This document shows positions 1,238-21,400 of a stretch of DNA of 64,000 nucleotides, in pieces. A program made the translations under genes and the position numbers. How positions within the stretch are numbered: the stretch's first letter is position 1; every line of letters starts with the position of its first letter. The DNA comes from Klebsormidium nitens (lineage: Eukaryota; Plantae; Klebsormidiophyceae): the NCBI GenBank assembly GCA_000708835.1, contig DF237060.1, forward strand, positions 129,787-193,786, written 5' to 3'. The notes beneath the pieces were generated by a model. It worked only from the letters and a program-made list of their open reading frames with translations. It made no database searches and was not told where the DNA came from.

Positions 1238-4200
1238 ATGGAAAGAAAAAAGAAACGCAAGGTCCCTTGGGGCTCGGGTATCGACTTAGAGAATTTTGGC
1301 AGCCTCCCCAACACCTCAGCATCAGCGTTTGAAGGAAGGGGCGCGTCCTCCTTTTCGCTTCGACCACGGCTCAGAGAGGAGATCGGGAGCTCCGTCCCAC
1401 AAGACCAGGACAGAGAACAGGAGAGAAGTCACGAGCAGATCTCGAGTGCTGAGCAAGGAACATCCTCAGCAGCACCCATGAGCACAGCACCTCGGGGCAG
1501 TGAAACAGAGGCGGAAAGACTTGCTGCCGCAATCTGGAAGCGAGAGCATCGGACGGGGATAGCAGGCTCAGTTTTGACGGCCATCCAGTTTGCCAAGAGA
1601 TGCATGTCCAGCCTTATCTTCGACCACAAGCAGTGAGTAATGAGGGAATATGTTCTTTTGTCCACACTTGACTGTGGTTATCCCTCAACCGTTTTCTAAG
1701 AATAAACTGTCAATGGTAGACAGCTTTAAACTGTTATCCATCTTCCAAGGTGCGTTTGCTCTTTGCAGTGTGCAACGTGGTATGCGGCAAAGGACACTGC
1801 CTTCAATTGGTCGTCTAACACATGTGTGCCTACCAGATCTGCTCTCTTTTGAGTTGTGACATGATGTGATCATTCGTCCTTGCAGTGAAAAGCAAACGAC
1901 AACCTTTGGCAGAAGCTGCGCCGAAACAGTAACTTCCCTCAAAGTAGCCGAGGACGCTACCCTCAACTCCAGGAAGGTTGGGTCTGTAAATGGGGTTCAA
2001 GGCTCAGGCAAGAGCACAATGGTAAGTAGAAAGGTAACAAATCTCTTTCGAGATGTCTCAGACCCTCACATTGAAAGCAGTGTATTACGTCCACATGGCT
2101 CACAGTCCAAGCTAAAATGGATTGAGAAAGCTTGCTAGTGCAACCCTCTGACCGAGAGCGTCTAATGTTGCCATAGTCAATTCTCAACAGCTTATTAGGC
2201 TCAAAAGCGGCAGCGAATGTGGCATGGGCCGAGGTTCCTTAGTAAACTTGAGCTCGAGGATCTGTTGCCCCTTGGTCTAAATCAGGTGTCCGAGCATGCA
2301 ACTCATTCTGCTCCTTTGGTGATGACAATCTGGATCGAGTCCGGCAAGACAATCTGCCTTCCTACTTCCTCCTCGTGTCCTTTAGAGAGGAGCTGCATAG
2401 GACTTCCTGAAGATTACCTCTCAAAACTTGAGGTGCTCTTAAGTCTCAGACGTGTTCTCTTTGCTTGCAGATGACCAATCTCAGCAGCTGCGAAGATGAA
2501 GAGAGCGTTCCTCAGACCGATGCTGAGGCTGCACATAGCCCCGAGCCGCAGCTGACCATTCGGATCAGTCAAGAGGAGTCCAAGGAGCGATTCCCAAGGA
2601 TCGAAAGCTTTGTGGTGAACAGCTACATAGAAACCTTCGACTTGGGAGATGGGAAGACCTGGGAGAAGGCAGTGGTACTTGAACAGAACGATCTGACGAC
2701 TGGCCAATACACAGTGAGTTGGTAATAACCCGCTGGATGGATGACCAACATAGGACATCTTTCAAAACCGGAATATTCAATCATTGTGACCTGGACCTGG
2801 TACTTCATCTGGACCTGTGAGACGTGAGATCAGCCCTCTAACGCGACGTATCTGCAGTGGATTCTGCCTGGCTTGGAATGATGCTACTCTTTCAGTGTTT
2901 GAATGTAAACCATTCTAGCATGATTAGTGAGCTCAACGCGCTTGGTTACACGAATGCAACAGCCGTTCCCCTTCAAAAGCCTCGAAAGTTACATTGTGTG
3001 TAATTTCGTGAAGCAAAGGTTTGGGGCCTTTGACAACTCACGTCCTTCGCTCGTGCCCTTTCAGATTCGTTATCTAGACGAGGAGAACAAGACAAACCCG
3101 AGCGACCGTACCCAAGTTCGCCTTTGTGTTGATCCACCCAAGCTCCAAAACGGATACTTGCTCGCGAGGCCTTCGTACAGGGTGGCTACGGTAAGTTCAA
3201 GAGAGCATCAGCCGCCGTTACTACGAAATCTTCGCTAGCTCCCAGTTAGTCGGACATCACTTCTCGCCTGTTAAGTCGCCTGGTATAAATGGCTCGTTTC
3301 TGTGCGACTTTTCAAATTTTGGCTGCATAGTCATACTGGGCTTTTGCATCGAGAGCAAATACGGGCTGCTTTTCAGGACGAACGCCCTACGTATAACTGG
3401 TCCAAGGCATCAAGCATCCGAAGCATCCTGTTCCAAGGCTCAAGACATTCAAGTTTCATTCAAGAGGTCATGCCAACAGTGCTTTGTGGAACTGCTCTTT
3501 GATACCCACTCCTAGGTGGCCGTTTCCCGTCGATTTCTGCTTTCATGTTGGAGTAAAGCTCTGCTTTGAGGTCCAGCCGAGATCCTAACCAAGGCTGTCA
3601 CATACTGGTTTGATGCGTTTTCTGATTGCTGCAAAGGACACAAGCCTTTCCTCTCTCTATAGGTAGCGGAAGCAGAGGAGTACTTCGGTAACAAGGAACG
3701 AGAGATGGAGTCCTTTGGAGAGGGCATTCACGCCCTGGGAAACTTCGGAGATTCAAGTCTCGTGCCACTGGAAAAGACCTACACGATGGGAGAGACCAAG
3801 GTGGTGTTGAGGGGATTCAGCAAACGCTTGGTAGCCTATTATATCCATCAGCTCATGGAGGAGAAGTGGATGAACTCAGACGACTACGATACTTCTCAAC
3901 GCGAATTCTCAGCAGCAGAGCTCAAGCGCATCAAGGCCAACGGGGTGGTTGGTCGCAGAATCATTGGCGTTCCGGAGGCCACTCCCATCGAGGACATTCC
4001 GTATGAGACGATATGCTGCTTTCAAGAGCAGGAGAAGGCCATTGGAAAGGCAGGTCGCAATTGGAAAGGCAGGTCGCTTGTTAGAGTTGATATTTTGATA
4101 TTTACTATCAATAAGTTGTGCGCCTAAATGGTGACTTTGGTCAGTTCAGATGCTTTTGCCATTTTTGTTGTAGAGATTTGCCCTTGACACAATTGCAATC

Positions 4201-7200
4201 ATTAGTTAAGGCTGCTCTTTTATATTCTATTTGCTGAAGTGATCAACGAGCGTACTTGTCGAGGCGACTGCGGTTGAAAAGGTTTTGTCAAAATTAATCC
4301 GACTGGGCAGACCCTGTCGAGTCACTGAATATAAGGGAGTACAGCTTCTTTCAATGATTGGATCCAATCATCGGTTGTCATTCTACTGGCTTTCCTATTG
4401 GATAACGAGTTTGACGTAATCCTAACAACGCTGACGACGAACTTGTTGCGGCGCTCCGAGCCATTCATCGCGCAAATGATATTCCGAATCCTTGTATTCC
4501 ATCAGATCCACGAGTACTCCTTCAGCCACGAGGGCCGATCAGAGGACGAGAAGAACTTTCTGTTCCGCAAACTGTGCAAGGAGGTGAAGCTGCTCACCAC
4601 GCAACGTCTCGAAGCGGACTGCATCTTCAATGACCTTTGCGTCCCGCTCTGGCACTCCGTGACGGAAAGCCAGCCGGACTCTTCGTTACCGGGGGTGGTT
4701 ATGATCGACAACCCGGGCGATAACTTTGTATCGGGAACGCACGAACTGGTAAGCTTGCTACGCACATCATTTTAGGAATTGGAGACTGGCAAAAGACTGA
4801 GATCGGTCTGCTTCTTCCTAAGTGTCTACTGTATATGTGGTTGCTATTCCCTACAAAGTTTACCGCAGATCAGACTTGAGACTGCCTTTTGATCAGTGAA
4901 CGTGCACCGGCGGAAAAGCGAAGCTCGCTTCATTAGTCTATGCTACAGATTTGTGTAGAAGCGACTTCCCAATTTTTTGCTCTAATCGAATTTTTCAACC
5001 CCTCCATCATAGATCAAGCCGCAGCCAGATTGCGGTGTTATCACGATCACTGCAACCGCAGGGCGTCACGGTGAAGAGAAGCACGAGGTAAGAAACGACT
5101 CGCCAATACTTCGGGGATCTCCTGCTCGTCATTGATTATGGCCGCTTGGTCTCCCTTAAGTAGAGCTGAGCCCGTCTCCGGAAAAAAGCCGTCTGATGCG
5201 TCGGGTTTGCAATGGTCTGACTTCTACATCTGTACAGTCTCTCACTAGAGGAGTCCGAGTTAGCAGGACTTGTAATGATCAACATGTAGACGTTAGATTG
5301 TTAGGTGGCCCTCTCCCCGACCATTATAGGAGCAGCAACTTGTCATGCGTTAATTCAAGGGCAATATGTCAGCACCGGGTGATGCTTCAAGGCGTTCCCC
5401 TTATTCCCCGTGAAGCCTAAGCTGGAATCTGATCTTCTTGACTGGCTCTCTTTGTTGAAGGGCGCTTACAAGCAGGCCACAGAGCTGCTTTTCCGAGGGG
5501 AGCTCAAACACCATCGTCAGTCTCCAAACGGACGCATCGACTTCGACCTAGCTCCAGAGGCGGAAGTGGCCTTGGTTTTCAACGCTGACAAAGAGTGGGA
5601 CAACGTTCGGTCTCAAGGGATTTGCATTGGCGTTTTTGAAGAATGGTAAAGCTTTGATCTTTCCTTCTAGCAACAATCGCTTGATTCCGTAGAATGTTTT
5701 GGAGTAGTCATCGCCTCGCCTGACTTCTTGGTCTTTGTTGTAAAATCGCGATGCAGATTTCAGAAAATCAGAATAGATTTCTTGGCTGGCTCCTCTAATT
5801 TTGGTCATGTTGGAGTACTAACGTTTGAATCCACTTTATTGCCTTTCTGCTGCATACGTTGTCGGTTGCGTTCTATCCTACCAAATCACGCTTCTGGAAA
5901 TTTACCACATGGGATTGCCTCTGTAAAATCTGTGCGGCTTGTTTCACGTCTCACAGGTATGCGGCGTGCCAGGAGACGGGGAAGAAACTTGGTCCCGAAA
6001 CTCAGCTAGGCAAAGAGTACCTGAAGGTCCGGAATCGAGTCGATGCGCTCAAGAAGACGCGAACCTCCGAGCTACGGGACTTCGCCGTCAAATACCTGCA
6101 GCGGGAACTTGGGATACCGAGGGACCTTGCTCGACAGCTGGTCAAGAAACGGATGGAGGAGGCCTTCCAAATGTACGCTGTATGCCTGCGCTACGGCCGT
6201 AAGAGGGACCACTACGACGGCCACGGATCCCCGGGGGTGAGTCAAGCGGTCATTTGATGATGTGGGGATCCTTACCCAACTTGCTCACGATCTCTAATTC
6301 TCTCAAAAGTGCATGTAGCTCTGTCTTCTCGACACCCATCACTCCAACGGAGGACCCTCAACTCCAACTCCAGCTCGAGTGCATACTAACTCTCCCTGTT
6401 ACTGGTGTGTTTATTCAGCTCTTACGTTTCATCCGGAAAATTCTGGCCCCTCAACTCATTGCGAGGCTACATCGTGGTGCTATTCGTTGAAACAAGTCGC
6501 GAGTGTTTGCTGGGTTCTGGCCTCGAACTTCCGGATCAAAGTCGTAATGAACGAAAGCGCCCTACTCGACTATGTTCCAAAACGCCATATCCATTCATCC
6601 GTTCCAGGAGCCGCGCATGGCACCGGAGGACGTCGGAATGGACGCGCTGACGAACTTCATAAAAAAGCCACCCCTCAGCCATCGGCCCTTGAAACCCGTG
6701 ATCGTCGAGGCTTCGGCGCTGCTATCTCAAGGACAAGCAGTCCTGGAAGGGGAGCTTGGGGTGTTCCGGCTGCAGTACGGCGGCCGGTCGGACGCCGACG
6801 TCCGCCAGGCCCTCGACGGACCAGTGCAAGCGGCTCTGAACAGCTTCACGGAGGAGATGGCCCTAGTGTCCATTCTCGAAAATCATGCCAAGAGGGAGAT
6901 GCGGGAGAATTTGGAGGCTCGAGGGAAGAGGTGCACCAAGGAAGTGGCAGCGGAGCAGGTAAGGGCTGCTTTTCACAAGGGAACGGTGTTGGTTGGCACG
7001 AGGTTGAAAACTCAGCGATTTACGTCAGAATTCCTGATCTGAATACTGGCTTGGGCATGTCAGCTGACAGCTTTGAAGCTTTCAAGATTGCATGTATGCA
7101 AGACTCGAGCTGTTACGGGTTTCGAACTACGGGCCACATGCCTTGTAGTCGATTCCTCCTGCATAGGGATTCAAGCAAGAGCAAGTTGATCTGCGGATTG

Positions 7201-10200
7201 TTTATCCCTGAGCAAACGATGTCGTCACTTCTTAATAGACTTCGTTCCTGAGTGGCAGAAGAAGAATTATATGCAGTGGGCAGGAGGGTGGGCCCTTCTC
7301 CGTTGAATGGAAGCCTTCTTAATTGGGCCAAAGCGCCTCTGCATAGCACTGCAAGCCTAACAGATTCCCCCCTTGCTTTGGGACAGATTCTTTCGAAGCT
7401 GGTCGACCCCGAGGTTTTGGAGTCTGACCCCACTCTAAAAGCAAGGGTCGGCAAAAAAGCCCTGAGCGACTTCCCACCCCAGATCCTGGCCGCGCACAAA
7501 GAGCAGCTCACTGATCTGCTGACAGACGGAGATTTTGAGGGGGAGTCGGGGGTCTATTCTGCGCTGGACCTTTTCCTACATCCGATCTTTGGAGTCCCCG
7601 AGCGGGTGGGCCTCAACGACATAGCCATACCCACCAGCTTGGTGACCACGTCATTAGGCCTCACCCAAAGGGACATTCCCGAGGGTGCGACCGAGCTCGG
7701 CGGCACCCTCCACGAGATACAGCGGGCGTATCGGCGGGTGGAGCGTACGATTCTTGAACAGCTAGATCTGGTAAAGGATCAACTACTGGACGATGTGTAC
7801 AAGAGAGCGAAGCAGCTGGTTGAGGTGAGGATACATATCTATCATTGGATAATTAGAAGGAAAAAAGTAATCTACCAGCAATTATATGTCTCTTCCTTCG
7901 GACAATTTTTGTCGAATTTCGAGTTTTCTCTCATGGGCTTCTTTTGATCTCATGCTGCATTTGATTCTGTCGGGTTTTATGTTTCAAAACCATGAAAAGC
8001 CCTGAAAGAACCAGATTTTTACTGGGCACTAAACATCTCAAGACAATATCTCGTGTTTCTTGTTAGCACTTGATAATACCTGCATCGAAGCATACATATC
8101 AAGTAAAAGATTGTTTCTGCATAGCGCTTGGTCTTACAAGAATCGGACTGTCGCAAGCTTGAAGCTTGCGCTTGAACGATTGCGCGTCCATGAGCTGACT
8201 TATTAACGTGTCGTCCTTCTGAGCTCTTACCTTTCTTGAGGAACGCCATCAACTTTAATATTAACGTGTACAAGATGACCGGTAGCGCTTGGAAAACATT
8301 TACGTTGCAAAATGTGACAGGGAAGTTTGACTAGGGCGCTAGGTTCGCATCACTGTTTCCGTCCTCACAAAATGAAGGATGTGCCATTTTTTGGTCGCTA
8401 CTGACAGGTACTCGAGATCTGCCAGCGTAGCGAGCCGGAAAGTCAATTCGAAGTCAGCCGTAGCAGGCACGTGGACTCCTACCGTTGCTTCAACGCCCTC
8501 AGTTACAAATCGTTTCAGGAAAAGCATGGTCTATCCGAGGTCCGATGCGTTTGGATTGTTTATCAAAAATATGAGGATTCATTCCTTATCTAATTAGTTC
8601 GCCAACCTGCAGGCTGAGATGCTCGTCCTTGACGTTCACGCGAGCGGCATCCTTCGTTCGCAGACCGTCCCCGACCTGGATGCAACGTGTTACATGGCGT
8701 CACTCTTCGATCACCGCAGCTTGGGGGTGAAGACCTTCTGGCTAAGGTTACACTTAGCAGTCTCCACGAGCGGCTCGTTTCTGAGTCGCCTTCGCGCCGT
8801 CGAACAGCACCTTCCAAACCTGGTGAAGGGCGTCATCAGGGGAGTCGAGCATCAGCTTGGCAAGGACTGCCGCGCCTGGGAACAAGCAGCCCGAAGGAAG
8901 GTTGAGGCTGCTGTAAATTCCGCCTGCGCCAACCTGCGTTCCAGCAGCAGGCAGCTGCCCCGGTCCGACGAGGACTGCGCCAAACAGTTTCCGAGGGTGC
9001 TCCGGGCGATCAATGTGCACTGCGCGCTGCGCAGCTGCGAGCCAGTCCTGCAACGCTTGAAAAACCTGTTGCCCTCTATGGCCGGAGGTGACGCGCATAA
9101 CCCCCTCACATTTCTGGAACTGAGTCCCGAGGACTTGGTGAGCTCAGTGCAGTCGATTGAGCGTGATGTCGCTCTCCTCACAGAACCGGATCCGGCCCAG
9201 TCGATCCTAGACGACATCCGCCTCTTGGAAGCATGCAAGCGCGCGGTTGCTGGCGGTCCAGGGAGGGCCCCGAAGTTCAGCGAAGCTCTCAGCGCGGCCG
9301 AAACTGGAAACCCGTCTAGCTGGTTTGACGGAACTCACGAGGGGATTCCCATGTCCGATCCGGAGTGCGTAGCGCGGGTGAAGCTCTACTCCTTAGCCTT
9401 CGAGGATGACCAGCTGCGAAGGGCCATTAACATCCTGAAGCTGGTGGTTAGAAAGCGGTTTTATGACAAGTGGGTGGAGCAAAACAAGCCGAAGGAGGGC
9501 TTTGTGGTCACCACAGTCCCAGGCCAAGGAGGTTATGCAGCTACTGGCGATCCAAGGAAGACGGAGGTCGTGTTCCAGGCGAGGCTTGTCGCCCTTGCGG
9601 TGAGAAAATGCCGTTTCGTTGGTTCGTTCTATCATGCCTCTTGCTTGACTCGGATCGTGCGCGTGCCTTCCTGCAAAGCTCTTTCTAATTGAGCACTTGC
9701 AACAATTCTTTGCGCGCTTCGTGGTTCGTGCACGCATCATTGCGCGCTTCTAAGTGCAGTTCCCACGAGAGTCCCTGGGTATTCGACAATCAACGGGCTT
9801 TAGTCCTCAAATGCAATTTCTAAGTAAGCTCCTGCTGCTTTGGGGTTCCAAAAGTTGGCACTGTTCCTTGTGATACTTGACTTGGTCGCCTAACTTCTTC
9901 CGTCCAACTCTTGTTAGATGGACACAGATTGGAACTAGGTAATTGTTTCATCCGTATCCTAACGGATCATTACCACAAAAAGACTTCCGTTTCGACTCTC
10001 TACAGTGCTGGAAAGAAGCCGAAGGCGTTGAGAGGGAGCGCGCAGAGCACCTGGGCAAGAAAGTTTACCCGCTACTGGAGAAGCAAATGGAACGGGTAGC
10101 AGGTGAGATTCTCATCTGCGATACACTGCATCCGAAGGCCGGCATCTGGAAAGTGTGTTTTACCTTCTACGAATTTCAATTCATGTCTTGAAAAGCTTTC

Positions 10201-13200
10201 CTGAGTATGAAGAGGGGAAGCATTTTCAACTTATAAGGTCGGTTTTGGGTATAATCCTTGTCGACATCAACAACTGACACGCCGTTAGAATCCAATTAAT
10301 CACGACCTCTACTGATTTCCTCGCGGCTGGCTCGGTTAACCATAAACTCTGGCCATACTCTAGTCCCTAAGCTTTGAACAGAAGACTTCTGCCGTCAACT
10401 TAGAAGGTGCCGTTTCAAAGGTCACGATTCCAGTAGGTGTCCTCATCATCAATCGATTACGGTGAAGGATGCTTCCGTCATAAGCTGTCTTTTTTTCTGA
10501 ACTACGGAGCCATTTCGTGGCTTCACTGCAGAGAAGAGGGGCTGGAGCTTGGAAGATGTGGGCTGGATCGAGGAGTCACACGTGCAATTGTGGTTGCGAG
10601 AGTACCTGGGTGTTCATGAGAACCTGGACGTGGCGTGGACCAAGATCTTCAAGGACCGGGTGAGAGATGAGTCCTCTTATACACGCTTGCGGACAAGCTA
10701 GCCCAGGGCTCGCCGCGGCGACCGGTTTTCAGAAAGGAGACAAGGCAACGTTTGGTGGCGCTTTTACACCATCTGTACCAGGATATCGGTCCTCAGTTTA
10801 CGATGTGGTTGGGTCGTACCCCTGTGCTTCAGACGCTGTCGTCAGTTCGAGTACTGGAACGGGTCAACATCAATGAAAGATGTTTTTTTCCTGTCACAAT
10901 TTGTCTAGGTGCCGGAGGGAGTGCGGTTCGAGCCATCCGAGTCGAAAAAGAGGACTGCCTACGGATTGCCTAAAAGCAGGGGCGCATCGGGTGCCAGCTC
11001 CAGTGCTAGCTCTGAGCATCTTGTTTGCGGCAAGTACGCAGCCGATTCGGACCCGAAAAGTGAGCACCGTTTTCTTTGCGTCTCAGCATGACTCTGCTCT
11101 AGCACGCAGTAGAAGCTCGCAAGAACACCCTATCTGACCAGGTCCCTGGATAAAAGTGCCCTGGCTTAATTGGCTCAGTTCGTTGTCGATCCCTTCAAAG
11201 GGTCATAAAATCCCTTAGATGACGCCATCTCAATTGGTGTTCGAGCTGCTGACGTCATCTGATGTTGATGGGTCCGCTCCTTGCTGAATACAGCTTGGAA
11301 GAGGGAGGCTTGCGAGGACTTCAAAACGGACCTGCTTGTAAAGCATGGAGCAACTACCAGGAGAGGTGAGGCTTCTGATATAGAGCAGCTCATCTTGTCA
11401 ATTATGGTTATGCAAGATTCGAGTGCGAAACAGAGCGGAGAACCCTGAGAGGTCGCATGCAGTCTCCTTCATTCCTTCAAGGGGCTCCAAAACTTTTTGC
11501 GCTGTTTTAGACGGAGAAGCTCTTACAGACTGATCAAAAAGCCTCAATTCTTCCTCGAAAGACCGGGGTGCGGACCTTTCAATCTTGACATATCACGAAT
11601 TGTTTCTTGACCCCGCGGACGAGCCACCCTGCGCAAGGTAGACTGACTCACAAGCACACAAGCAAACCCAGTTGGGCTGTGTACGAGGCTTGAGGTCAGC
11701 GACTAAGTTTGCCTACATTGAACCGCAGCGATGACTTGCTTTTACAGAAAACGGACATTATTACATCCAATTGCCAACAAGACAAGGGCAGCTGTCCAGT
11801 CTCAAAGCGGTGAGCCTCAATCTTTGACAAGAGATTCTGTCTTTCAGTTGCGATCGTAATGTCAACAGGGGCGTTCAACGACTGCAGGGTCCTTTTTGAG
11901 AAGATGGTCCGAGTTTGCATCCCATCGTTTTGGGTCCTAGATTTTGCGACTTCAACTGCATTTACTAAGATTGCCTTCATGTTTCGAATTTTTGGTTGCT
12001 GCTGGATTTATTTGCTTTGCAATTGCTAAAGACCGAGTAAGAATTCTCTGGGTCTGAGGCATCTTGACTGTCATTCCTTAAATCGAGTATGTCAACATCG
12101 AGACGGTATTTATGTCATGAGGCCATCCGATTGCAGGCTCTTCAGGAGGCTGAACGGCGAGAGAAGGCTGGAGCTGTCTCGGTAAGAGTAATTCTTTTTC
12201 AACGAAGCAGCACAGTCAAGCCTGGCAGGTTCATTGCTGGGCATGGGAGATCATTCTTGAAATGTTTGACTTCCGAAGTCACCTTCTCGATGATACTTTT
12301 CTTTTTCTCCGGTTTCGTCACTCAATCCCTGCCCTTAAGTCAATCATGAACCAGTCGCTCGACGTTCCTTAATGCTAAGTCTGTGAGACGGCTTGCTGAA
12401 TGCATTCCAGGGGCTCTACTTCGAGTTCATTCTACTGAGCACAGTTTGATTCAGAACAAACGATGTAAGCTGCTATTTCTGCGTCGAACTAATCTGGCTC
12501 GACGGGTATGCTTTCTATGCTCAGGGCCAGCAATGCACTGTTTGCTTGGCGCGCTTTGCGTCGGAAAAGCTGTACCAGCACCCCCACTTCAACGTTCCCA
12601 TCTGCGAGAGCTGCTTGGGGGCCTTCTGGAAAACGGAGAGTGGTCAGGAGGCGGCCTCGAAGTTTCAGTGCGAAGACGTAAGAGTCATGGCCACCATTAA
12701 CATCTGGCAAAGCCGTCAAATTTTTGTTTGCAATGCCTCAAAAGTCAAGCCAGCTAGAAGTGCAGACGAGATCTTGTGCATACGTTAGGCTTGGTTACAA
12801 GACCATCTCTCCTCGCTTGAAACATAGAAGCCTGGAGTAATTCTCATGAAGAAGAACGGTATAAGCTGCGGGCTTGCTGTTTGCTTCCCGGATTTACATT
12901 GTCAAGCCCTCAAAGACGCCTTGTTTTTGAAGATGTTGCAGAAGGATGGCATTGGGGACTTCTGTTCCTGGTGCGGCGCTGATGGCAGGTGCCCAGCGAA
13001 GGACACGGAGAGACACCAGGCATGCAACAAGTGCAGCAAGGCCTATTGCAACGGCTGCCTGATGCGGCTGTTCGGAAAATTCATTAAGAAGGACATCGTA
13101 CCCCGGGAGTGGCACTGCCCGGCGTGCTTGCGGGACGAAGGCAGCACCAGGATTGATTACTGGGTGAAGAAGGGCAGCTCACTGAGGGTCGCTCCCAAGC

Positions 13201-13205
13201 CTTAA
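1238..13205 (+). CDS. Large multi-exon gene: putative nuclear dynamin-like (NUGGC/SLIP-GC-like) P-loop GTPase with Tudor/Agenet-like insert and C-terminal ADD zinc finger
   Basis: Hand-spliced, phase-consistent exons: 1238-1632, 1973-2021, 2471-2713, 3065-3190, 3663-4049 (GC donor), 4506-4748, 5013-5087, 5392(or 5416)-5645, 5957-6236, 6608-6958, 7387-7824, 8613-9599, 10006-10102, 10532-10659, 10909-11059, 11294-11365, 11562-11637, 12032-12181, 12455-12464, 12525-12677, 12942-13205. Sum 4929 nt, ~1,640 aa. Starts MERKKKRKV (SV40-like NLS). G1 KVGSVNGVQGSGKSTM (1992-2018); G3-like VVMIDNPG (4707-4718); ADD Cys pattern at 12534-13127. Possible extra exon in 2022-2470; exons between 11.3 and 12.5 kb are less certain. 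Confidence 0.7.
2591..3172 (+). other. Tudor/Agenet-like domain (split over two exons) inside the GTPase fold of the 1238-13205 gene
   Basis: Spliced translation FPRIESFVVNSYIETFDLGDGKTWEKAVVLEQNDLTTGQYT|IRYLDEENKTNPSDRTQVRLCVDPPKLQNGYLLARP follows the Agenet/Tudor pattern (E..DG..W..A.V....g.Y.I.Y.D....e.v......RP). Recognised by eye, no HMM run. Confidence 0.55.
12534..13127 (+). other. ADD (ATRX-DNMT3-DNMT3L) domain: GATA-like finger plus PHD finger
   Basis: CTVC...LYQHPHFNVPICESC...|KDGIGDFCSWCG...ACNKCSKAYCNGCLMRLFG...EWHCPAC reproduces the ATRX ADD spacing (CTAC...YRHP.L.V.IC..C...DG.DE.C.WC....CD.C..AFC..C..R..G...W.C..C). Confidence 0.85.
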
Positions 13206-14566
13206 GGGTAATGGTCGCAGGTCGGGGCTTTAGCCGCTGCTGCACCGATCGTTTGGATCGTGGGGGAAAATAACGGGAGCTTGCTTGAAGGAACAACAGG
13301 CTAGAGAAAGGAGCTCTTGGCGAAGAGCTTTATCTGAAAGGAAAGGAGCTCGAACTGATATTCTTCAGCAGATGCCAGTAGGGGCGACCGGATAACCTCT
13401 GTTAGGATTGGAGGGCAAGAACGTTTTTGGGGCGAGGGTTTTCAATTAGCTGTTTTTAGGTTATGCTTTTAGAATAAGTGATCACAGAGATACGCTTGTA
13501 GTTGATTTGGTTCAGCTTACGTCTTTTCCTTTAGTCTTGTGTCACGAGCTCTTAGCCCGATTTAAGACAGGCTGGCCGAGCGGGCCCACCAGACGGCATC
13601 TTCGCGGCCGGTCGTTTCGACCGGCCAAGCAATATGGGTAGCCCACTAAAGTTGGTAGCTATAGCAGGCAGATTTGTAGATGTATTTTGAGTCGTTGTGG
13701 GCTGATTGCTGTGAAAGCCCCTAATCAACGAACTCCCGTTTGTGACAGAGCTTTTGGGTCGGCCCTCAGCTTGGTATCCCAAATAGATCTAGTTGCTAGA
13801 GCAGACGTGCAACTGTATATGCTGTAAACTCTGATATCATTGTGGGCTGGTTGCTGTGGAAGGCCCCTGTCCACGAAGCTCCGGTACTTGAATGAGTCTG
13901 ACCTTTCGGGCCAATCGTTTGCGTCAAACCATATGAAAAGTTTTAGGACTCATTGTCAACGACGTTCACTCAGTGACTCGACGAGCACAGAAATTTGCCG
14001 GCGCAGCGGCAAGGTCCTTCTTCGTGTCTTTGCACGCGTGAGTCTTTGTTTGTGTATACGTCGGCGTCTGCACCTAGCTTCGGTGCGGATCCGTTTTGAT
14101 CTCATCATGCTTAAGTACCGGCAGCAAGAGACTTTTTGACGCTCCCGACGGTGAACCGTTATGTGTCGGACAGTACGTGTAGGCTAAAGTTTGCAACATC
14201 TCATTGGATCAATAAAAGCTATAGCTGTATCGCACTGCACCGTCATGATCCTTTACAATCTCCTGCGACATTCATTGGGCCTCCGAGGACATTTGTGAAG
14301 GTGCCGGCTTCATTTGCATATATGCACGAGCGCAGTCGCGCCGGGGCGTGCCATGATGTGTCATGCGTTAGTGGTGCTCGTTCGGTCTTATTTGCAAAGC
14401 GAATTTGGACAGGCAAATTGAATGTAATTCCGCCGGACCTACAGACCGATCGGATCACCGGCATCGATTGAGGTACATCATCTAGCATTCGGGCGGGTGC
14501 ATGTAGGGGCTGAATTCACCATTCTACAAAGCTAGCGCTATGCACAACGGTTGCACCCGCCCACTT

Positions 14567-15450
14567 TCAAAAGATATCAGAGTTGCAACATAGGTTCACG
14601 GCATACGGCACCGTTGTGAACAGCTCTGCAATAAGCTCCAGATCTTTCGTCAGAAAGCGCCACAGCTCTTCGGGGCTAATCCTATGCGCCCGCAAATCCC
14701 GGTCCGTTCCTGCCAAGACCGCCTGCCTTTGTTCCAACCTCTTACGTAGCTTTGTCAGGGGGTTCTTCACCCCCTCCAAATCAAGGAGGGTCTGATGCAC
14801 GGGATGCTCCTGGGATCGTTTTAAAACCCGTTCAGAGCCTCAGATTTTGCTTCAGCCGTTCTGATTGATTGCGCTGGGACAAAGGCGACCTCCGTCCCCG
14901 AGCAGAACTCCGATGGCTTGTCTCCGAATGCAACGCGGAGGGAAAGCTAAAGAACGGAGGCTCTTCTAACTCGGTAAATGCAGCTACCGGAGTAGGGGGC
15001 TTCGAAACACCGGGTGGTGGCGGAGGGGGCTCCGAAGGGCCGGGTTGTGGCACCGTGGGGGCGGGATGGGGAACTAGAGGTGGCAGTCGGAGGTCACTGA
15101 TTGTCCGGAGGGGCCCCGGCCGGGGGGGTGCTCAAGGGGGTCGAGGGGGGCGCTAGGGGCGGGACACGGACCCGAGGAAGGGCGATCCGTGGCCGGAAGC
15201 GGCTAGGGGGGGAGGGGCCGGGACGAACGTGGGGCTGGGCAGGAGGGATGCGAGCATGCGGTCGCGGGGAAATATGGAAAGGCGGCCGCGGCCGCCGATT
15301 CGGCCGACCAGGGGCGGGGGGTGTGTCCGGCGGTCGGGGAGCGGAGGGCCCGGTTCTGCCCCTGCGGGCAAGTCCCCGGGCCGAACTTCCTCAGCTTTGG
15401 ACTCGTCGGCGCCCGCCTTTTGCAGCTGAACTTGGATGAACGTCAGCGCG
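14567..15450 (-). other. Coding-like Pro-rich/helical gene fragment abutting the 3' end of the pseudogene copy
   Basis: GC-rich ORFs 14832-15053 (PQPGPSEPPPPPPGVSKPP...) and 14567-14800 (TLLDLEGVKNPLTKLRKRLEQRQAVLAG...), the latter preceded by a CAG acceptor. No match to the intact paralog; identity unknown. Confidence 0.3.
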
Positions 15451-15451
15451 G

Positions 15452-18400
15452 GGGGCTCGTCGCTGCATCCCTCTCCCTCCGGTAACTCTCCACAAACTGC
15501 CGCTCGTCGTGGGCACGTGCCTCAGCCTGCCCGGTTGCCTCCTTCCGTGCAGTCTGGGCGCCGCATTCCTCCTCTGCTTTTCTGTTCTTGGAGGCGCCGC
15601 TCGAGCGCCCGGGCGGCCGCGAGGCCCTCCTCGGTTGCTCGACGGACTTCCGTCTTGGCCTGGAAACCGGAAAAGGTCGGCGGTAAGAATCTCCATCATT
15701 TGATGCCTCACTTTGCCTTGCGAGTTTCATGAGTCGGATCAAGGCAAGAAAGTAACGTCCAAGGAGACAATCGAGCTTTGCTTGGGCTCTGGAGTCCCCG
15801 TTACGAGCGCTCAGGCGATGGGAACGTTCTTGCACAGCCTCCTGGTCGCGAGCTCCCTACTTTCGTCGTATGGAAAATGACAAGCCCGGCCCTACCAACA
15901 CAACCGTATTTCCGCTAGGCAGCAACCGCCTTTCAAAGAGCCAAGCAAGAAAGCGGACGAAAAGACCTACAAGAGCGCTAGTTGTTCGTAGGAGCTCGCG
16001 GACTGTGACCTGGGCCTGGCGAGAAAAAGAAAAGATAGGACGAAATGAAGAAATAACTCTCCCTTGAGAAACCGTTGGCATTAGAAGGAGAAAAGGTAGC
16101 GTCCAAAGCGCACCTCTTCGTCCGCCTTGACCAGCAGTCCCCGCACGCGCTGCATCTCCCCCTCCAACTCTGCTACTCTGACCGCGCCACCGTTTCCGTT
16201 CCGCTCGCAGTGCTTCCGCCTCCCCCCCCTTCCGTCGGAGTTCCGTCTCGCGGAAGCCCACTAGCGCCTCAAGCTCTGCTAGCTTTCCGGCGGCTCGCAG
16301 CCGCTCTTCCTGAGCGGCCGCTGCCGCCCGAAACAGGGCCTTTTGGTGGTCTACTTCCAGGGCGTGCAGGGCCTTCTGAGCTGACGTCACGTGCTGGTGT
16401 GCCAGGTGGCACTCGGCGGCCTTGCTCTGGAGCTGTTCTTGCAGACTGCGGGAAAGGAGGGCCTGAGGTCGGGAACGCAATGCACCAACTACCGTACAGG
16501 ACATCTGGTTCCTCAAGTCCATTGTAGCTGGTTCATAGGTACGAGGTTCAACCAAACGCACGCACAGATTTAGAGAGGCTGTGGGCTTCTGTTTGTTGGG
16601 ACTGCCTACTTATACTTCTTCTAAGTGACGCACCGTCCGTGACAAGTTCCGACGGCCTCGTGCTCTCGCTCATGTTCCTATCAGCCACCATCTTTTTGCA
16701 TGCTGTATAACAAGACATTCTTTTGTCGCAATCTGATTGAGCCGACGTCCTGGCAGCGATCATCTATGATTCTACCAAAAATAGATACGTTTGAATTCAA
16801 CGGCGATCCTTATCCTCAATTTCACCCTCCTCGGAGCGCTATTATTAGCTTCTGAAAACAAGCCCTACTGTACACTACCCAAGCTACATAATCACACATA
16901 ATAAAGCAAGAGTCCTACTCGCGCTCCTTACCGGCTAACTTCCGCGTCCAGCTCCGCCCCCTCTGCGCGCGCCTTCTTGAGCTTCTGCCCCAGAATCCGC
17001 TGCGCCGCGATCGCGCTCTTCTTCGCCTGCGCCTCCACGCGCAGTGCTGCCTCCAGCCGCTCGCCGGCGGCTTAAAAGCCTAAACCCTCCCCCCGCGCGG
17101 CCGCCAGCTTTGTCTCCAGCCGCATAGGTATACTCTTTCCCTAAGCCACTGGCTTCTTCCAGAGCCGCGAAGTGCGTGCGCGCGCGCCCCCGTCCTCGGC
17201 CGCCGCGTTCTCCAGCAGCGGGGCGCTCTCGAGGACGGAGTGTGAATGGGCGCCCCCGATCACGAGGACCCGGTGACCGTCGAACACGGCCTGAACGCCC
17301 ACCTCTGCGGGAAGGAATCCAGCGAACTGCCACGTGGCAGCACTTTTTCCCGTCTCGTAACTCTCCGGATTCCAACCGATACTCGCGCTTTTCCTCTTGG
17401 TTTGCTCGCGGTTTCCGAGCGGTCCGCCTTTTCCGGACGCCTGTCGTCCTCATACGCGATGGCCCACTGAACTTCGTCGCTCCCGCAACCCCCCCCGGTG
17501 CGCTCAAACTCGCCCGCACTCTTGCCACGCCTTTCGTCGTCCCGCTCTCGTGCCAACATTCAGATCGATCTCTCGCAGCTCTCGCCGCGACGCCTCCAGC
17601 TCCCCGACCAGCGCCACGTGGTCGGCTGCTGACGTCATCGGGGCTCTTTGGAGCCAGATGAAGCCGTCGATGTCGAGCGTGTACACGTCACCAGGTAGTC
17701 GGCTCCGTTGAAGGCCGCCGTAAATGAGCACCTGACGCCCGATGGCAGTGGACACGTGGCCTCGCCTGGTGGCCGGTATGTCCCCAACGGGGTCGACTCT
17801 CCCTCCGCCATACCATGGGTTTCAGATCCTGTAGTACAACAAGAGATTCTAATTGAGATTGGAAAGAGGAAGAGGGATTCAAAACACTTTAATCCCACCA
17901 AGTAAATGCAGACGTCTCTGACGACGATCGCACTAAAGCTCCCTCATGAAGCTGGGTAAGGAAGATACCAGCAGAGCACCTCCACTTCACCAAGCTGCTC
18001 TTGCACCGGCGTCCAGGAGCTTGCTTCCACTCCCGTGATTCACTTCAAGAAGACCCCCAATAACGCTGACAGCGCACAGAACAGTGAGTCCTCTCGCAAA
18101 GTGCCAGCTTGCATCGGTTCCGCAACTTACTAGGACACGAAAACAATTTCGCACTGACCAGCACATACAGGTCGCTCAGATGCGCCTGCCCGTCGTAAGT
18201 CCCGTGCACCAACACCAGGTCCCAAAGGCTTCAGGATTTCGAGCGTTAGCAACTCATGAATATAGCGCTTAGGGTATTATCTCAACTTACCAGCGCATAG
18301 AGGTCACCCAGATGCGTCTGCCCGTTGTACCCCCCGTGCGGATCACTAGGTCTCCGAGCGCCTCCATCACGTGGACCCTCCGTGCCCGGGGGGGATCCCC

Positions 18401-21400
18401 GGCCACCACCGGCTGGCTCCACTCCCAGCGGTCCAATTCAGCACCCACCCACCCACCCACCCACCCAATTCAGCACCCACCCACCCACCCAATTCAGCTC
18501 GTTCAGCAGGCCGGAACCGGAACGGTACCCGCCAAAAAGGGCCACGTCGCGGCCGGAGGGCAGCAGGCAGCAGGAGGCGTGGGAGAGGGGGCCGGGGCGA
18601 GCGCCCATGCCGAGGTCGGGCTGTGACCAGTGGAAAGTGCCTGAAGGGCGAAAAGTTGTTTAAATTTAGTGCAGAAGTATGAAGGGTGTAAAGTATGCAA
18701 ACGATGGGCGATCCATCTGGCTCAGTGACTAACCCCACTCTTATCTCTGACACGCAATAATCGGACAATCCAGATGCGACTGAGAAAAGTAGACAAGATG
18801 TACGCAGGCCAAACCATGCCAGAATCAATCAAACCAAGGACAACGAGCCGGAGACAGCTTCGTGCGAAGGAGGTGCTGAGAATCTGTGGGATTAGACGAA
18901 TAGAAGTGGTGCTTCTAACACCCTATTGCCATGAACAAGACCAATTGCCCACTTGACGAAAAGCACTAGAAGATCGTGCAGGCGCTGAAAAACATCTTAC
19001 CGATCGTGCAATTAATCCTTCAATCCTGCTTTGTTAAGAGTAAGTATGCCGGCGAGCTTCGTGTAGAAAAAAGCAGACCTCCAGTACGCGGCCAGGCTGG
19101 TCTGCATCGCACCTTGTCTGGGTAATACTCTGTTGACCATTTTGTTGGAGGATTTCGTAATCTGAAGGGCAGATGGTCGCCGCTTGTCAGTGGGGAAGAG
19201 AGTAGGCCTGCTTTTCTTACCTCCGTCGTCGCTCACATTCAAGACGTGTAAGTCCGCCAGCTCCTCGCTCCCATCGAAGCCCCCAAAGACGGGCTGCATC
19301 CGCCGCCCGGGGATGGCGCACGCGCAATGGTCGTTGCGCGCCAGTGGGGCTTCCGACGATTCTGACATCTCCTCCGTCCAGGCTTAATATTCTGTGTTCA
19401 AAAGACGGTGACATGAGATGCTCAGTTGAAAGACGGTGAGGATGGATGCTCAGGTGAAATCTCCTTGAATCACCTCTGTAGTACTCATCTTTTACGGCCA
19501 TGACAAAATCGTCAAAGTGGGGATTATTCGATTCGCATTGCGATACTCGTATAGTCCCTGCGGCCAAACACTCACAGCTTCCGACCCAGGCAAGCACAGA
19601 CAGTCGCAACAAGGAGTCTGACTCCACCCTAGGTCACGCTTGCTCTATAGCAATAGAAGGAAAGAACTGGCACAAAATGGTTGCCACGTCATCCTGACAG
19701 GCACTTGCGATTGTGCGGGTAAGCCGCGACCTACCGTCCAGCATCCCACTGCTCCGGGAACAGGAAATCGCGCGCTCGCAAGATCTGCTGACGCGAGCAG
19801 TGTGCGCCTCTCCGCCTGGTACTCCTCCAGCCAGGACAGAGCCTCGTGCTCTGCGCCGTCTCGGCAGCAGACAGGTTGGCTTGCAACTCGTGCATCCGCT
19901 TGGAGAAGCGATCGGAGGAGTCCTCGAGCTGAAGACGAACGCCCTCATCTGAAGAGTAGAAAGAATCAAATCTGTTGCAGCAGAAACCTTTCGAATCCTC
20001 CTTTTGGCAGACGCAAAAAGCACGCGCGGTCATGAGCATTGATCGTATGTGACGACAGCGAGTATGGGCAGCATGGGTCCTCCCAGAACAGAAGAAAGCA
20101 CTAACGGATTGCCAAAAGTGTCCGGTTTCAGTGGAAGGCATGTGCGTACATCAGTCAATGAGGCAACTGAACAAGGAGCAGTCCGTTATGACTGTCATGA
20201 GCGTCATGAAATTGAACGTGTCACTCCTGAATGTCAAGTACTAGGTTCTTCGATGTCATCCATCAAAAAAACTCTGGAGTGCAAGCCGTTTGCACTCGAA
20301 TCAGCATGAACTTTCAGAGACTTACTGAACCCTGTTGTCTTTCTATTGTATGCCACAGCATATGCGTGCACGGTGCGTCTAGACTCACTTGTCATCGACT
20401 TCCACTCCACAAACGCCCTCCTCAAAGCACTGCGCCGGACCCGCTGCAACCCCCTGCTGACGAAAGCGCGGTGCCGCTTCCTTCCGACACACAAGCTACT
20501 CCACGCTCTCAGCAGCGTCTGCTTTCTCCTCAGGAACATTCTGTCCTTGAATGCTCTGACCGTTTCGCAAAGGCAACCCAACCCCACCTCTGAATTTGAG
20601 CCGCCCTCTTCTTCTGAATCTCCCGGCAACAAGCCCGCAGTACGCGCTTCCGCTCGACCAACTCGCACCAGCCCCACAACATAAGTCCTCGATCCCGGGC
20701 CTGCCATGTTTTCCTGCTTTCAGCCCCTTTCGCAGCTCCTCCCTTCTCCATATCACCAACAACTTCCCCAACAGCTTCCTTTTCTCGCTGCTCTAGCTGT
20801 CTCCCTCCACCCCCCAATGCGTTCAGCATAACCTGCGCATCCACTGCTGCCTGGGCCCGGTCTAAGAGCCTCTGCTTAAGGACAGAGGCCTTGCACAGCA
20901 AGGAATTATTCTGCGCCTCCCTCTGCAGTAGCTCCCGGGACCAATTGCTGCTCACGCTCTGCCAGGGCCTTCTGCTCTAGCGAAGCCAGCTCCGCAGCGT
21001 CCAGCTGGCGCTTCAGGGCTTGGTTCCTCCGCTCGAGGTCCAGCAAGGCTGAGTTCTTGTGCCATTCCCATTGGGAGCCTGGGACCTGCACAGAAAGATA
21101 AGCTAAGTTGCCTCTCTGATGGAATTGATTGATCCTCCCTGTCTACGGATGTTGGTGATGAACTTGAAAGCCTTGAAGCTAAGTCAGAGAGGATGACGAG
21201 GTGTCACGTTTCTAAGTTTGCTCTTCAAAAAAGGCTTTCAGAGAGTCTTGACCTGAAAGCATGCCCCTCGGTGATCAGCTTCCCTTCACAGGTCAACCTT
21301 CTTGCGGACCTCATAATTGGCGCGGTTTTGAATTCCAAAAAGAGGGCCACCTATTGGCTCAAAAGAGCTGTCGAAGTTACCAACCACCACAGGACCTGGC

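Follow-up and report, generated by a model that had tools for sequence, protein, structure and literature searches.

A candidate nuclear protein joining a divergent P-loop NTPase module to an ATRX-type ADD domain in the streptophyte alga Klebsormidium nitens

The locus and its gene model

The DNA analysed here is a window of 64,000 nucleotides (nt) from contig DF237060.1 of Klebsormidium nitens, to which all coordinates refer unless stated otherwise. On its plus strand, positions 1238-13205 are occupied by a multi-exon eukaryotic gene, KFL_001110220, the subject of this analysis. Twenty-one exons, joined by hand and with their frames checked by script, give a single open frame of 1,649 codons from ATG 1238 to TAA 13203-13205, and an in-frame stop codon lies directly 5' of the ATG (1235-1237). 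All joins are of the GT-AG type bar the one between exons 5 and 6, which is possibly GC-AG. An earlier note on this DNA, made from the letters alone, had proposed 21 exons in one frame beginning MERKKKRKV, and the rebuilt chain bears this out; the landmarks that it named, GVQGSGKST, IDNPG and a complete C-terminal ADD domain, can all be located in the spliced frame. The basic nuclear localization signal (NLS) that it placed at the N-terminus is likewise present, as an SV40-like motif in a single annotated gene; KKKRKV is the core of the SV40 T-antigen NLS. The features of the locus are as follows, with the basis of each in brackets.

1238-13205, plus strand: whole coding span of KFL_001110220 (1,649 residues in the 21-exon model, compared with 18 exons and 1,513 residues in the GenBank model)
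1238-1632, plus strand: exon 1, with the start codon, the NLS-like MERKKKRKV (1238-1264) and an N-terminal region rich in Ser, Ala, Glu and Arg (spliced frame)
1886-2021, plus strand: exon 2, with the Walker A or G1 P-loop GVQGSGKST at 1992-2018 (spliced frame; weak matches to the P-loop only)
2471-3190, plus strand: exons 3 and 4 (2471-2713 and 3065-3190), a beta-rich segment (no Pfam or PDB match; predicted local distance difference test score, pLDDT, of about 30 in AlphaFold2, AF2)
3663-4748, plus strand: exons 5 and 6, a mostly helical insert followed by VVMIDNPG, a Walker B or G3-like DxxG motif, with IDNPG at 4704-4718 (spliced frame)
5013-5645, plus strand: exons 7 and 8 (5013-5087 and 5461-5645), with the strand-like DCGVITITATAG and the G4-like FNADKEWD at 5578-5601 (codon usage and splice sites)
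5957-11365, plus strand: exons 9 to 17, a region of about 880 residues without homologs that includes exon 8408-8539 and the 329-residue exon 8613-9599 (phmmer, Pfam and PDB)
11562-11641, plus strand: alternative exon with an in-frame TAG at 11639-11641 (good acceptor, coding-like content, weak donor)
11748-12181, plus strand: linker exons 11748-11809 and 12137-12181, leading from the gene body to the ADD exons (splice scores and frame)
12525-12677, plus strand: ADD part 1, a GATA-like C2C2 finger, CTVC ... YQHP ... CESC (Pfam ADD_ATRX and alignment with the ATRX ADD)
12942-13205, plus strand: ADD part 2, a PHD-like finger with CSWC, CNKC, CNGC and CPAC, then the C-terminal tail and the stop codon TAA 13203-13205 (zf-4CXXC_R1, PHD_4 and alignment with the ATRX ADD)

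The number of exons is uncertain at two places, the junction of exons 5 and 6 and the linker between 11059 and 12525. At the former, the candidate donors are 4050 (GC), 4073 and 4080 and the candidate acceptors 4506 and 4526, and depending on which are used, as many as about 10 residues of the protein change. Positions 4038-4075 hold a perfect tandem duplication of 19 nt (ATTGGAAAGGCAGGTCGCA), in which the last part of exon 5 and a donor-like CAG|GTC are repeated, and this makes the true donor of exon 5 ambiguous. The alternatives in the linker give proteins of 1,634-1,680 residues.

The public annotation

The earlier note held that this gene is broken into unlabelled pieces and easy to miss, which was overstated. 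With the 329-residue exon 8613-9599 as query, phmmer found a single genuine match among 1.84 billion cluster representatives, a protein of 1,513 residues that is 100% identical across the exon. This is GAQ82446.1 (KFL_001110220; UniProt A0A1Y1I0Z9) of Klebsormidium nitens, from scaffold DF237060.1, which is described as a 'PHD-type domain-containing protein' in UniProt and as a 'hypothetical protein' in the public annotation. Its 18 exons begin and end at the start and stop codons of the 21-exon model, and it already unites the end that carries the NLS and P-loop with the end that carries the ADD. The K. nitens genome was annotated with Augustus plus mapped transcript assemblies (PMC4052687), and the KFL_001110220 model is a prediction rather than per-gene proof.

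Coding potential was judged by comparing the codon usage of the exons shared with the GenBank model with trinucleotide usage in introns, taking 4,000 stop-free intron windows as background. Every exon common to the two models has coding-like codon usage. Three further exons of the 21-exon chain, 5013-5087, 5461-5645 and 8408-8539, score above all 4,000 of the intron windows and are bounded by strong splice sites that are compatible in frame. In the GenBank model, 5461-5645 and 8408-8539 are absent, and at 5013-5087 there is a shorter exon with another acceptor and another frame. GAQ82446.1 thus seems to omit two coding exons and to mis-set a third, and the rebuilt chain corrects the public gene model at these points.

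The C-terminal ADD domain

The best characterized part of the predicted protein is its C-terminus, which, to judge from sequence comparison, is a genuine and complete ATRX-type ADD with GATA-like and PHD-like fingers, as the earlier note had recognized. Its six cysteine pairs are CTVC (12534-12545), CESC (12603-12614), CSWC (12963-12974), CNKC (13023-13034), CNGC (13047-13058) and CPAC (13116-13127). Among 177,635 PDB sequences, the top three matches are the ATRX ADD constructs 3ql9, 2jm1 and 2lbm (E = 6.9e-5 to 9.3e-5), in a single alignment that covers both fingers over domain residues 10-120; the PDB matches that follow are at least 80-fold weaker. The best Pfam family for the GATA-finger exon is ADD_ATRX (E = 1.3e-4; 22.1 bits, under the gathering cut-off of 25.7), while the PHD-like finger exon matches zf-4CXXC_R1 (27.1 bits) and PHD_4.

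All 12 zinc ligands of ATRX are kept. CTVC and CESC of the GATA-like finger align with C171/C174 and C197/C200, with the Y-x-H-P motif present as YQHP, and CSWC, CNKC, CNGC and CPAC of the PHD-like finger align with C220/C223, C232/C235, C240/C243 and C265/C268. Further ATRX residues that are kept are Y187, H189, P190, D212, D214, G215, W222, R246, G249 and W263, and E218 is present as Asp. Compared with the ATRX domain, 9 residues are inserted at one place and 8 at another. In ATRX, the contacts of the ADD with the H3 tail include Y203, which is the cation-pi partner of K9me3, an acidic loop at 207-218, H189 and E252 (PMC12900699). The K. nitens domain does not conserve Y203, D207/D208, D217 or E252, the changes being Y203 to Ala (followed directly by Phe and Trp), D207 to Thr, D217 to Gly and E252 to Ile. 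Binding to the H3 tail unmodified at K4 is plausible, because H189 and the acidic-loop residues D212, D214 and E218 (as Asp) are kept; reading of H3K9me3 is doubtful, because Y203 aligns to Ala. The targeting to heterochromatin that the earlier note proposed is unproven: the H3-binding residues of ATRX are retained in part only.

ADD domains also occur in DNMT3A, DNMT3B and DNMT3L, and the Pfam family ADD_DNMT3 weakly matches the GATA finger (E = 0.082). This is clearly weaker than the match to ADD_ATRX, there is no DNMT3 ADD chain among the PDB matches at E <= 1, and the K. nitens protein has no methyltransferase domain. The ADD is not a copy of the DNMT3-like retroelement in the window, as a tblastn search of the protein against the window shows no second ADD; the same search reveals no paralog of KFL_001110220.

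The P-loop module and the region without homologs

The N-terminal module has a G1 motif of the form GxxxxGK[ST] (GVQGSGKST) and a G3 motif of the form DxxG (VVMIDNPG), the pair that the earlier note had pointed out, although these motifs are not specific to dynamins. They are 328 residues apart, and no acidic residue follows the Asp of the Walker B motif. The only G4 candidate, FNADKEWD in exon 8, fits neither (N/T)KxD nor, unless an insertion of three residues is allowed, NxWD.

Family scans, PDB searches and structure predictions covered the exons and the GenBank model, and hmmsearch and hhalign were run on the spliced model. No GTPase family, including Dynamin_N and MMR_HSR1, matches the protein or any exon at E <= 10 in Pfam, NCBIfam, PADLOC or PHROGs. 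At the P-loop and its flank there are weak profile matches to Ploopntkinase3 (E = 9e-4) and AAA_30, sub-threshold ones to PtuA (E = 0.039), TupC (0.1), AAA_29 (0.12) and AztA (0.18), and weak PDB matches to SufC, to a kinase of the gluconokinase type and, also below threshold, to EttA (E = 0.055); all of these are ATPase or kinase families. Sequence searches of the PDB gave nothing meaningful for the N-terminal module (residues 120-620), exon 6, exon 8, the beta-rich segment or the central region. We also compared the spliced model, with and without the insert, with alignments of the E. coli CrfC/RdcA family, representing the dynamin superfamily, and of the ABC-type Old family of phage P2; hmmsearch with hidden Markov models (HMMs) of these two families found no match in it. 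The P-loop is real, and the N-terminal module appears to be a highly divergent, unclassified P-loop nucleoside triphosphatase (NTPase). Since the Walker B Asp stands in a DxxG motif and is not followed by an acidic residue, the motifs lean towards a module of the GTPase-like or kinase-GTPase class.

The segment between the two motifs, residues ~215-300, is rich in beta strands, and a barrel is conceivable there by eye. The earlier note labelled it as a Tudor/Agenet insert, which finds no backing in Pfam or PDB sequences: no Pfam family, whether Tudor, Agenet, chromo-barrel or other, matches residues 215-300 or exons 3-4, and a PDB search gives chance matches only (factor H, PCNA). The AF2 model of residues 130-560 is unusable over this segment, where its pLDDT is about 30. 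The Tudor label is unproven.

The long region that the earlier note described after the P-loop amounts to about 900 residues, and it stands as a region in which we detect no relatives. Exons 9 to 17 match nothing in Pfam or the PDB, and the phmmer search with exon 8613-9599 found, besides the protein itself, one spurious repeat protein among the 1.84 billion representatives. Word-indexed searches, with the N-terminal region among long and medium-length proteins and with the C-terminal 214 residues among short proteins, returned the protein itself or nothing, and scans of metagenome and viral contigs were empty. A plasmid match in tblastn (E = 0.1) was rejected as a chance occurrence of 'SVNGVQGSG' in an AsmA-family protein. 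Apart from the ADD, no part of the protein has a detectable homolog in these searches, which suggests a lineage-restricted, single-species orphan.

Linkage of the ADD exons

That the ADD exons belong to one transcript with the upstream exons is, in our judgement, likely. Continuity of frame is in itself weak evidence of one gene, because as many as 63 frame-compatible exon chains exist between 11059 and 12525. The chain that leads from 11294-11365 through 11748-11809 and 12137-12181 to 12525 has donors scoring 10.8, 9.0 and 7.3, all beyond the 99th percentile of background GT sites (6.1), and the splice scores of the linker exons exceed the 95th to 99th background percentiles. Codon usage is coding-like in 11294-11365 and 12137-12181 (p ~0.01) and neutral in 11748-11809; of the two linker exons, the GenBank model includes only 11748-11809. 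The ADD exon 12525-12677 contains no in-frame ATG and depends on an exon 5' of it.

The neighbourhood

Just 3' of the stop codon, two 41-nt copies (13692-13732 and 13837-13877) are 80% identical and lie 145 nt apart. Further downstream are two annotated minus-strand genes in convergent orientation, at ~15153-17559 and 18367-20707 (358 and 325 residues), with no Pfam family on record. A GC-rich block at 14994-15500 (GC 0.71 in 15001-15500), which opens with 1.9 copies of a 30-nt unit (14994-15051), adjoins a convergent minus-strand gene at its 3' end. An Rfam scan of the window returned nothing.

Discussion

We propose that KFL_001110220 is a single gene and that its product, about 1,650 residues long, is a nuclear protein restricted to this lineage, with an ATRX-type ADD that would tether a divergent P-loop NTPase to histone H3 tails; we put the probability of this reading at roughly 0.6. 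From N- to C-terminus, the protein would consist of the SV40-type NLS, the Walker A motif GVQGSGKST, a beta-rich and helical insert of about 320 residues, VVMIDNPG, some 900 residues without homologs, and the ADD. The ADD would dock the protein onto the N-terminal tails of histone H3 and would thereby carry to chromatin a module for nucleotide-dependent switching or assembly, by analogy with ATRX, in which the ADD is coupled to an ATPase.

Several observations weigh against this proposal. The linkage of the ADD exons is drawn from the Augustus model and from strong splice sites that are compatible in frame, and within the same interval the segment 11562-11637 combines coding-like codons (p = 0.016) and a good acceptor (5.3) with a weak donor (0.7) and, directly after it, an in-frame stop, TAG 11639-11641. 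The ADD_ATRX score lies below the Pfam threshold, and the ATRX residues Y203, D207/D208, D217 and E252 have not been conserved. Modelled by AF2 from the single sequence, the ADD reaches a pLDDT of 54.7, and Foldseek with this low-confidence model finds no PDB match at E <= 0.001. For the N-terminal module, no NTPase family reaches significance, and the AF2 model of residues 130-560, made without an alignment, has a pLDDT of 33.7. Finally, no orthologs were found by which purifying selection could be gauged.

The segment 11562-11641 is also the starting point for an explanation by two genes or isoforms, which we consider unlikely. It may be the last exon of a distinct gene upstream, or of an isoform without the ADD; the NTPase protein would then stop at TAG 11639-11641, the ADD would lie in a separate protein of about 170 residues starting at ATG 12089, and what looks like a fusion would be an artefact of the annotation or just one of several isoforms. 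The frame that begins at ATG 12089 does run into 12181 and onward to the ADD exons, chance chains that keep the frame are common in this interval, and the public model that joins the two parts is a prediction. However, the segment 12089-12136, which a separate ADD gene would require, is not coding-like, as 12089-12181 scores 0 compared with 5.6 for 12137-12181 alone. Two genes would have merely ~450 bp left for a 3' end and a promoter, and they would have to be reconciled with the strong donors of the linking chain, with an ADD exon that depends on an upstream exon, and with the union of both parts by Augustus. The differential-expression tables of PMC9121098 do not list KFL_001110220, and we found no paper that names it or its accessions.

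The earlier note read the NTPase module as a TRAFAC GTPase like dynamin or NUGGC, with a Tudor/Agenet barrel between G1 and G3, aimed at heterochromatin by two histone readers, which we hold to be possible but doubtful. In its favour, the P-loop GxxxxGKST is followed by MMTNL, the G3 motif has the form hhhhDxPG with PG ahead of it and no Glu after the Walker B Asp, and exon 8 has a strand and NADKEWD at the place expected for G4. There is local resemblance to E. coli CrfC/RdcA (b4109), both at LPGVVMIDNPGDNF compared with YPGQLTLLDTPGPNE and at PQLTIRIS compared with LPTLIRH; hhalign puts G1 and G3 in register with CrfC, and the two proteins agree in the shapes of these motifs, in the PG before the G3 strand, and in having a large helical remainder after an insert between G2 and G3. 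The G1-G3 gap of CrfC is itself about 165 residues, and the beta-rich segment shows, by eye only, a Tudor-like alternation of residues. Yet the hhalign result is not significant (P = 0.18, probability 0.3%), the family HMM is empty, and Dynamin_N, MMR_HSR1 and the other GTPase families are missing even at E <= 10, as are PDB matches. The G4 candidate is NADKEWD instead of NKFD or TKxD, the K. nitens insert is about twice as long as that of CrfC, the weak P-loop matches are all to ATPase or kinase families, and the Tudor label is unsupported by Pfam or the PDB. The protein should not, on this sequence evidence, be filed as a dynamin.

The same weak matches lend themselves to another arrangement, an ABC-type head like that of SMC, RecF, OLD or PtuA proteins, which we regard as quite unlikely. 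On this view the strands of residues ~215-300 would form the lobe-I sheet rather than a Tudor barrel, lobe II would correspond to the helical insert, RSEDEK would be what is left of a signature motif, and the Walker B motif, without its catalytic Glu, would be IDNPG or CIFND, so that the module would be a dimerization switch driven by ATP binding and not a GTPase. The matches at the P-loop flank are all ABC- or kinase-like (AAA_29, TupC, AztA, SufC); that to PtuA extends over 100 residues and that to EttA reaches the Q-loop region. The resemblance to OLD/PtuA/RecF-like ATPases extends to module size and to a beta-then-helical insert before Walker B, and the distance between Walker A and Walker B, about 320 residues, is of the same order as in P2 Old (262 residues). 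The hhalign score against Old (25.0) is better than that against CrfC, and Walker A is aligned, as is FSHEGRSEDEK with FGHGTQRS. The result is, however, not significant for a single comparison (P = 0.022, probability 2.2%), the family HMM is again empty, and the register of the motifs is unstable, with the Walker B of Old placed on CIFND instead of IDNPG. LSGGQ is missing, neither of the two Walker B candidates (VVMIDN and CIFNDL) has the catalytic Glu, none of the Pfam families ABC_tran, AAA_21, AAA_15 and SMC_N matches, and no Toprim or other partner domain accompanies the module. We accept neither the dynamin nor the Old class, because neither hhalign result is significant.

Under the reading that we prefer, the architecture is new, with a known reader as one of its components. 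It is chiefly in ATRX and DNMT3-type proteins that ADD fingers have been described, and there they link an enzyme to the state of the H3 tail. The K. nitens protein would resemble ATRX in joining an ADD, alignable over its entire length and both fingers, to a module that uses nucleoside triphosphates in a nuclear protein. It differs in that the ADD is C-terminal instead of N-terminal, and in that the SNF2 ATPase remodeller of ATRX has no counterpart in it: its NTPase is a small P-loop module without SNF2 helicase motifs or matches. MORC proteins, which combine a GHKL ATPase, a CW zinc finger that reads histones and a coiled coil, may be a parallel in design, as they too have a long helical region and a zinc finger that reads H3 in the same chain as a nuclear NTPase; the folds (GHKL as against P-loop) and the readers (CW as against ADD) are different and there is no sequence relation. 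Drosophila dADD1 pairs its ADD with MADF domains and is not known to carry an NTPase. It is neither an ATRX nor a DNMT3 protein, and it shows that ADDs can occupy other architectures (PMC4249797).

At present KFL_001110220 is a lead rather than a discovery, being a single-species orphan with an unclassified NTPase. It is a long shot that Klebsormidium may have evolved a 'reader-coupled' family of large P-loop NTPases in the nucleus, in which similar divergent heads would be combined with differing readers (the ADD here, methyl-CpG-binding or Tudor-like ones elsewhere); these proteins would assemble on silent chromatin in a nucleotide-driven manner, and neither land plants nor animals would have a counterpart of the system. 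If the fusion is one mRNA, streptophyte algae would have re-used the ADD to aim a different nucleotide-dependent machine at chromatin, which, if true, would bear on how the heterochromatin tool-kit evolved before land plants.

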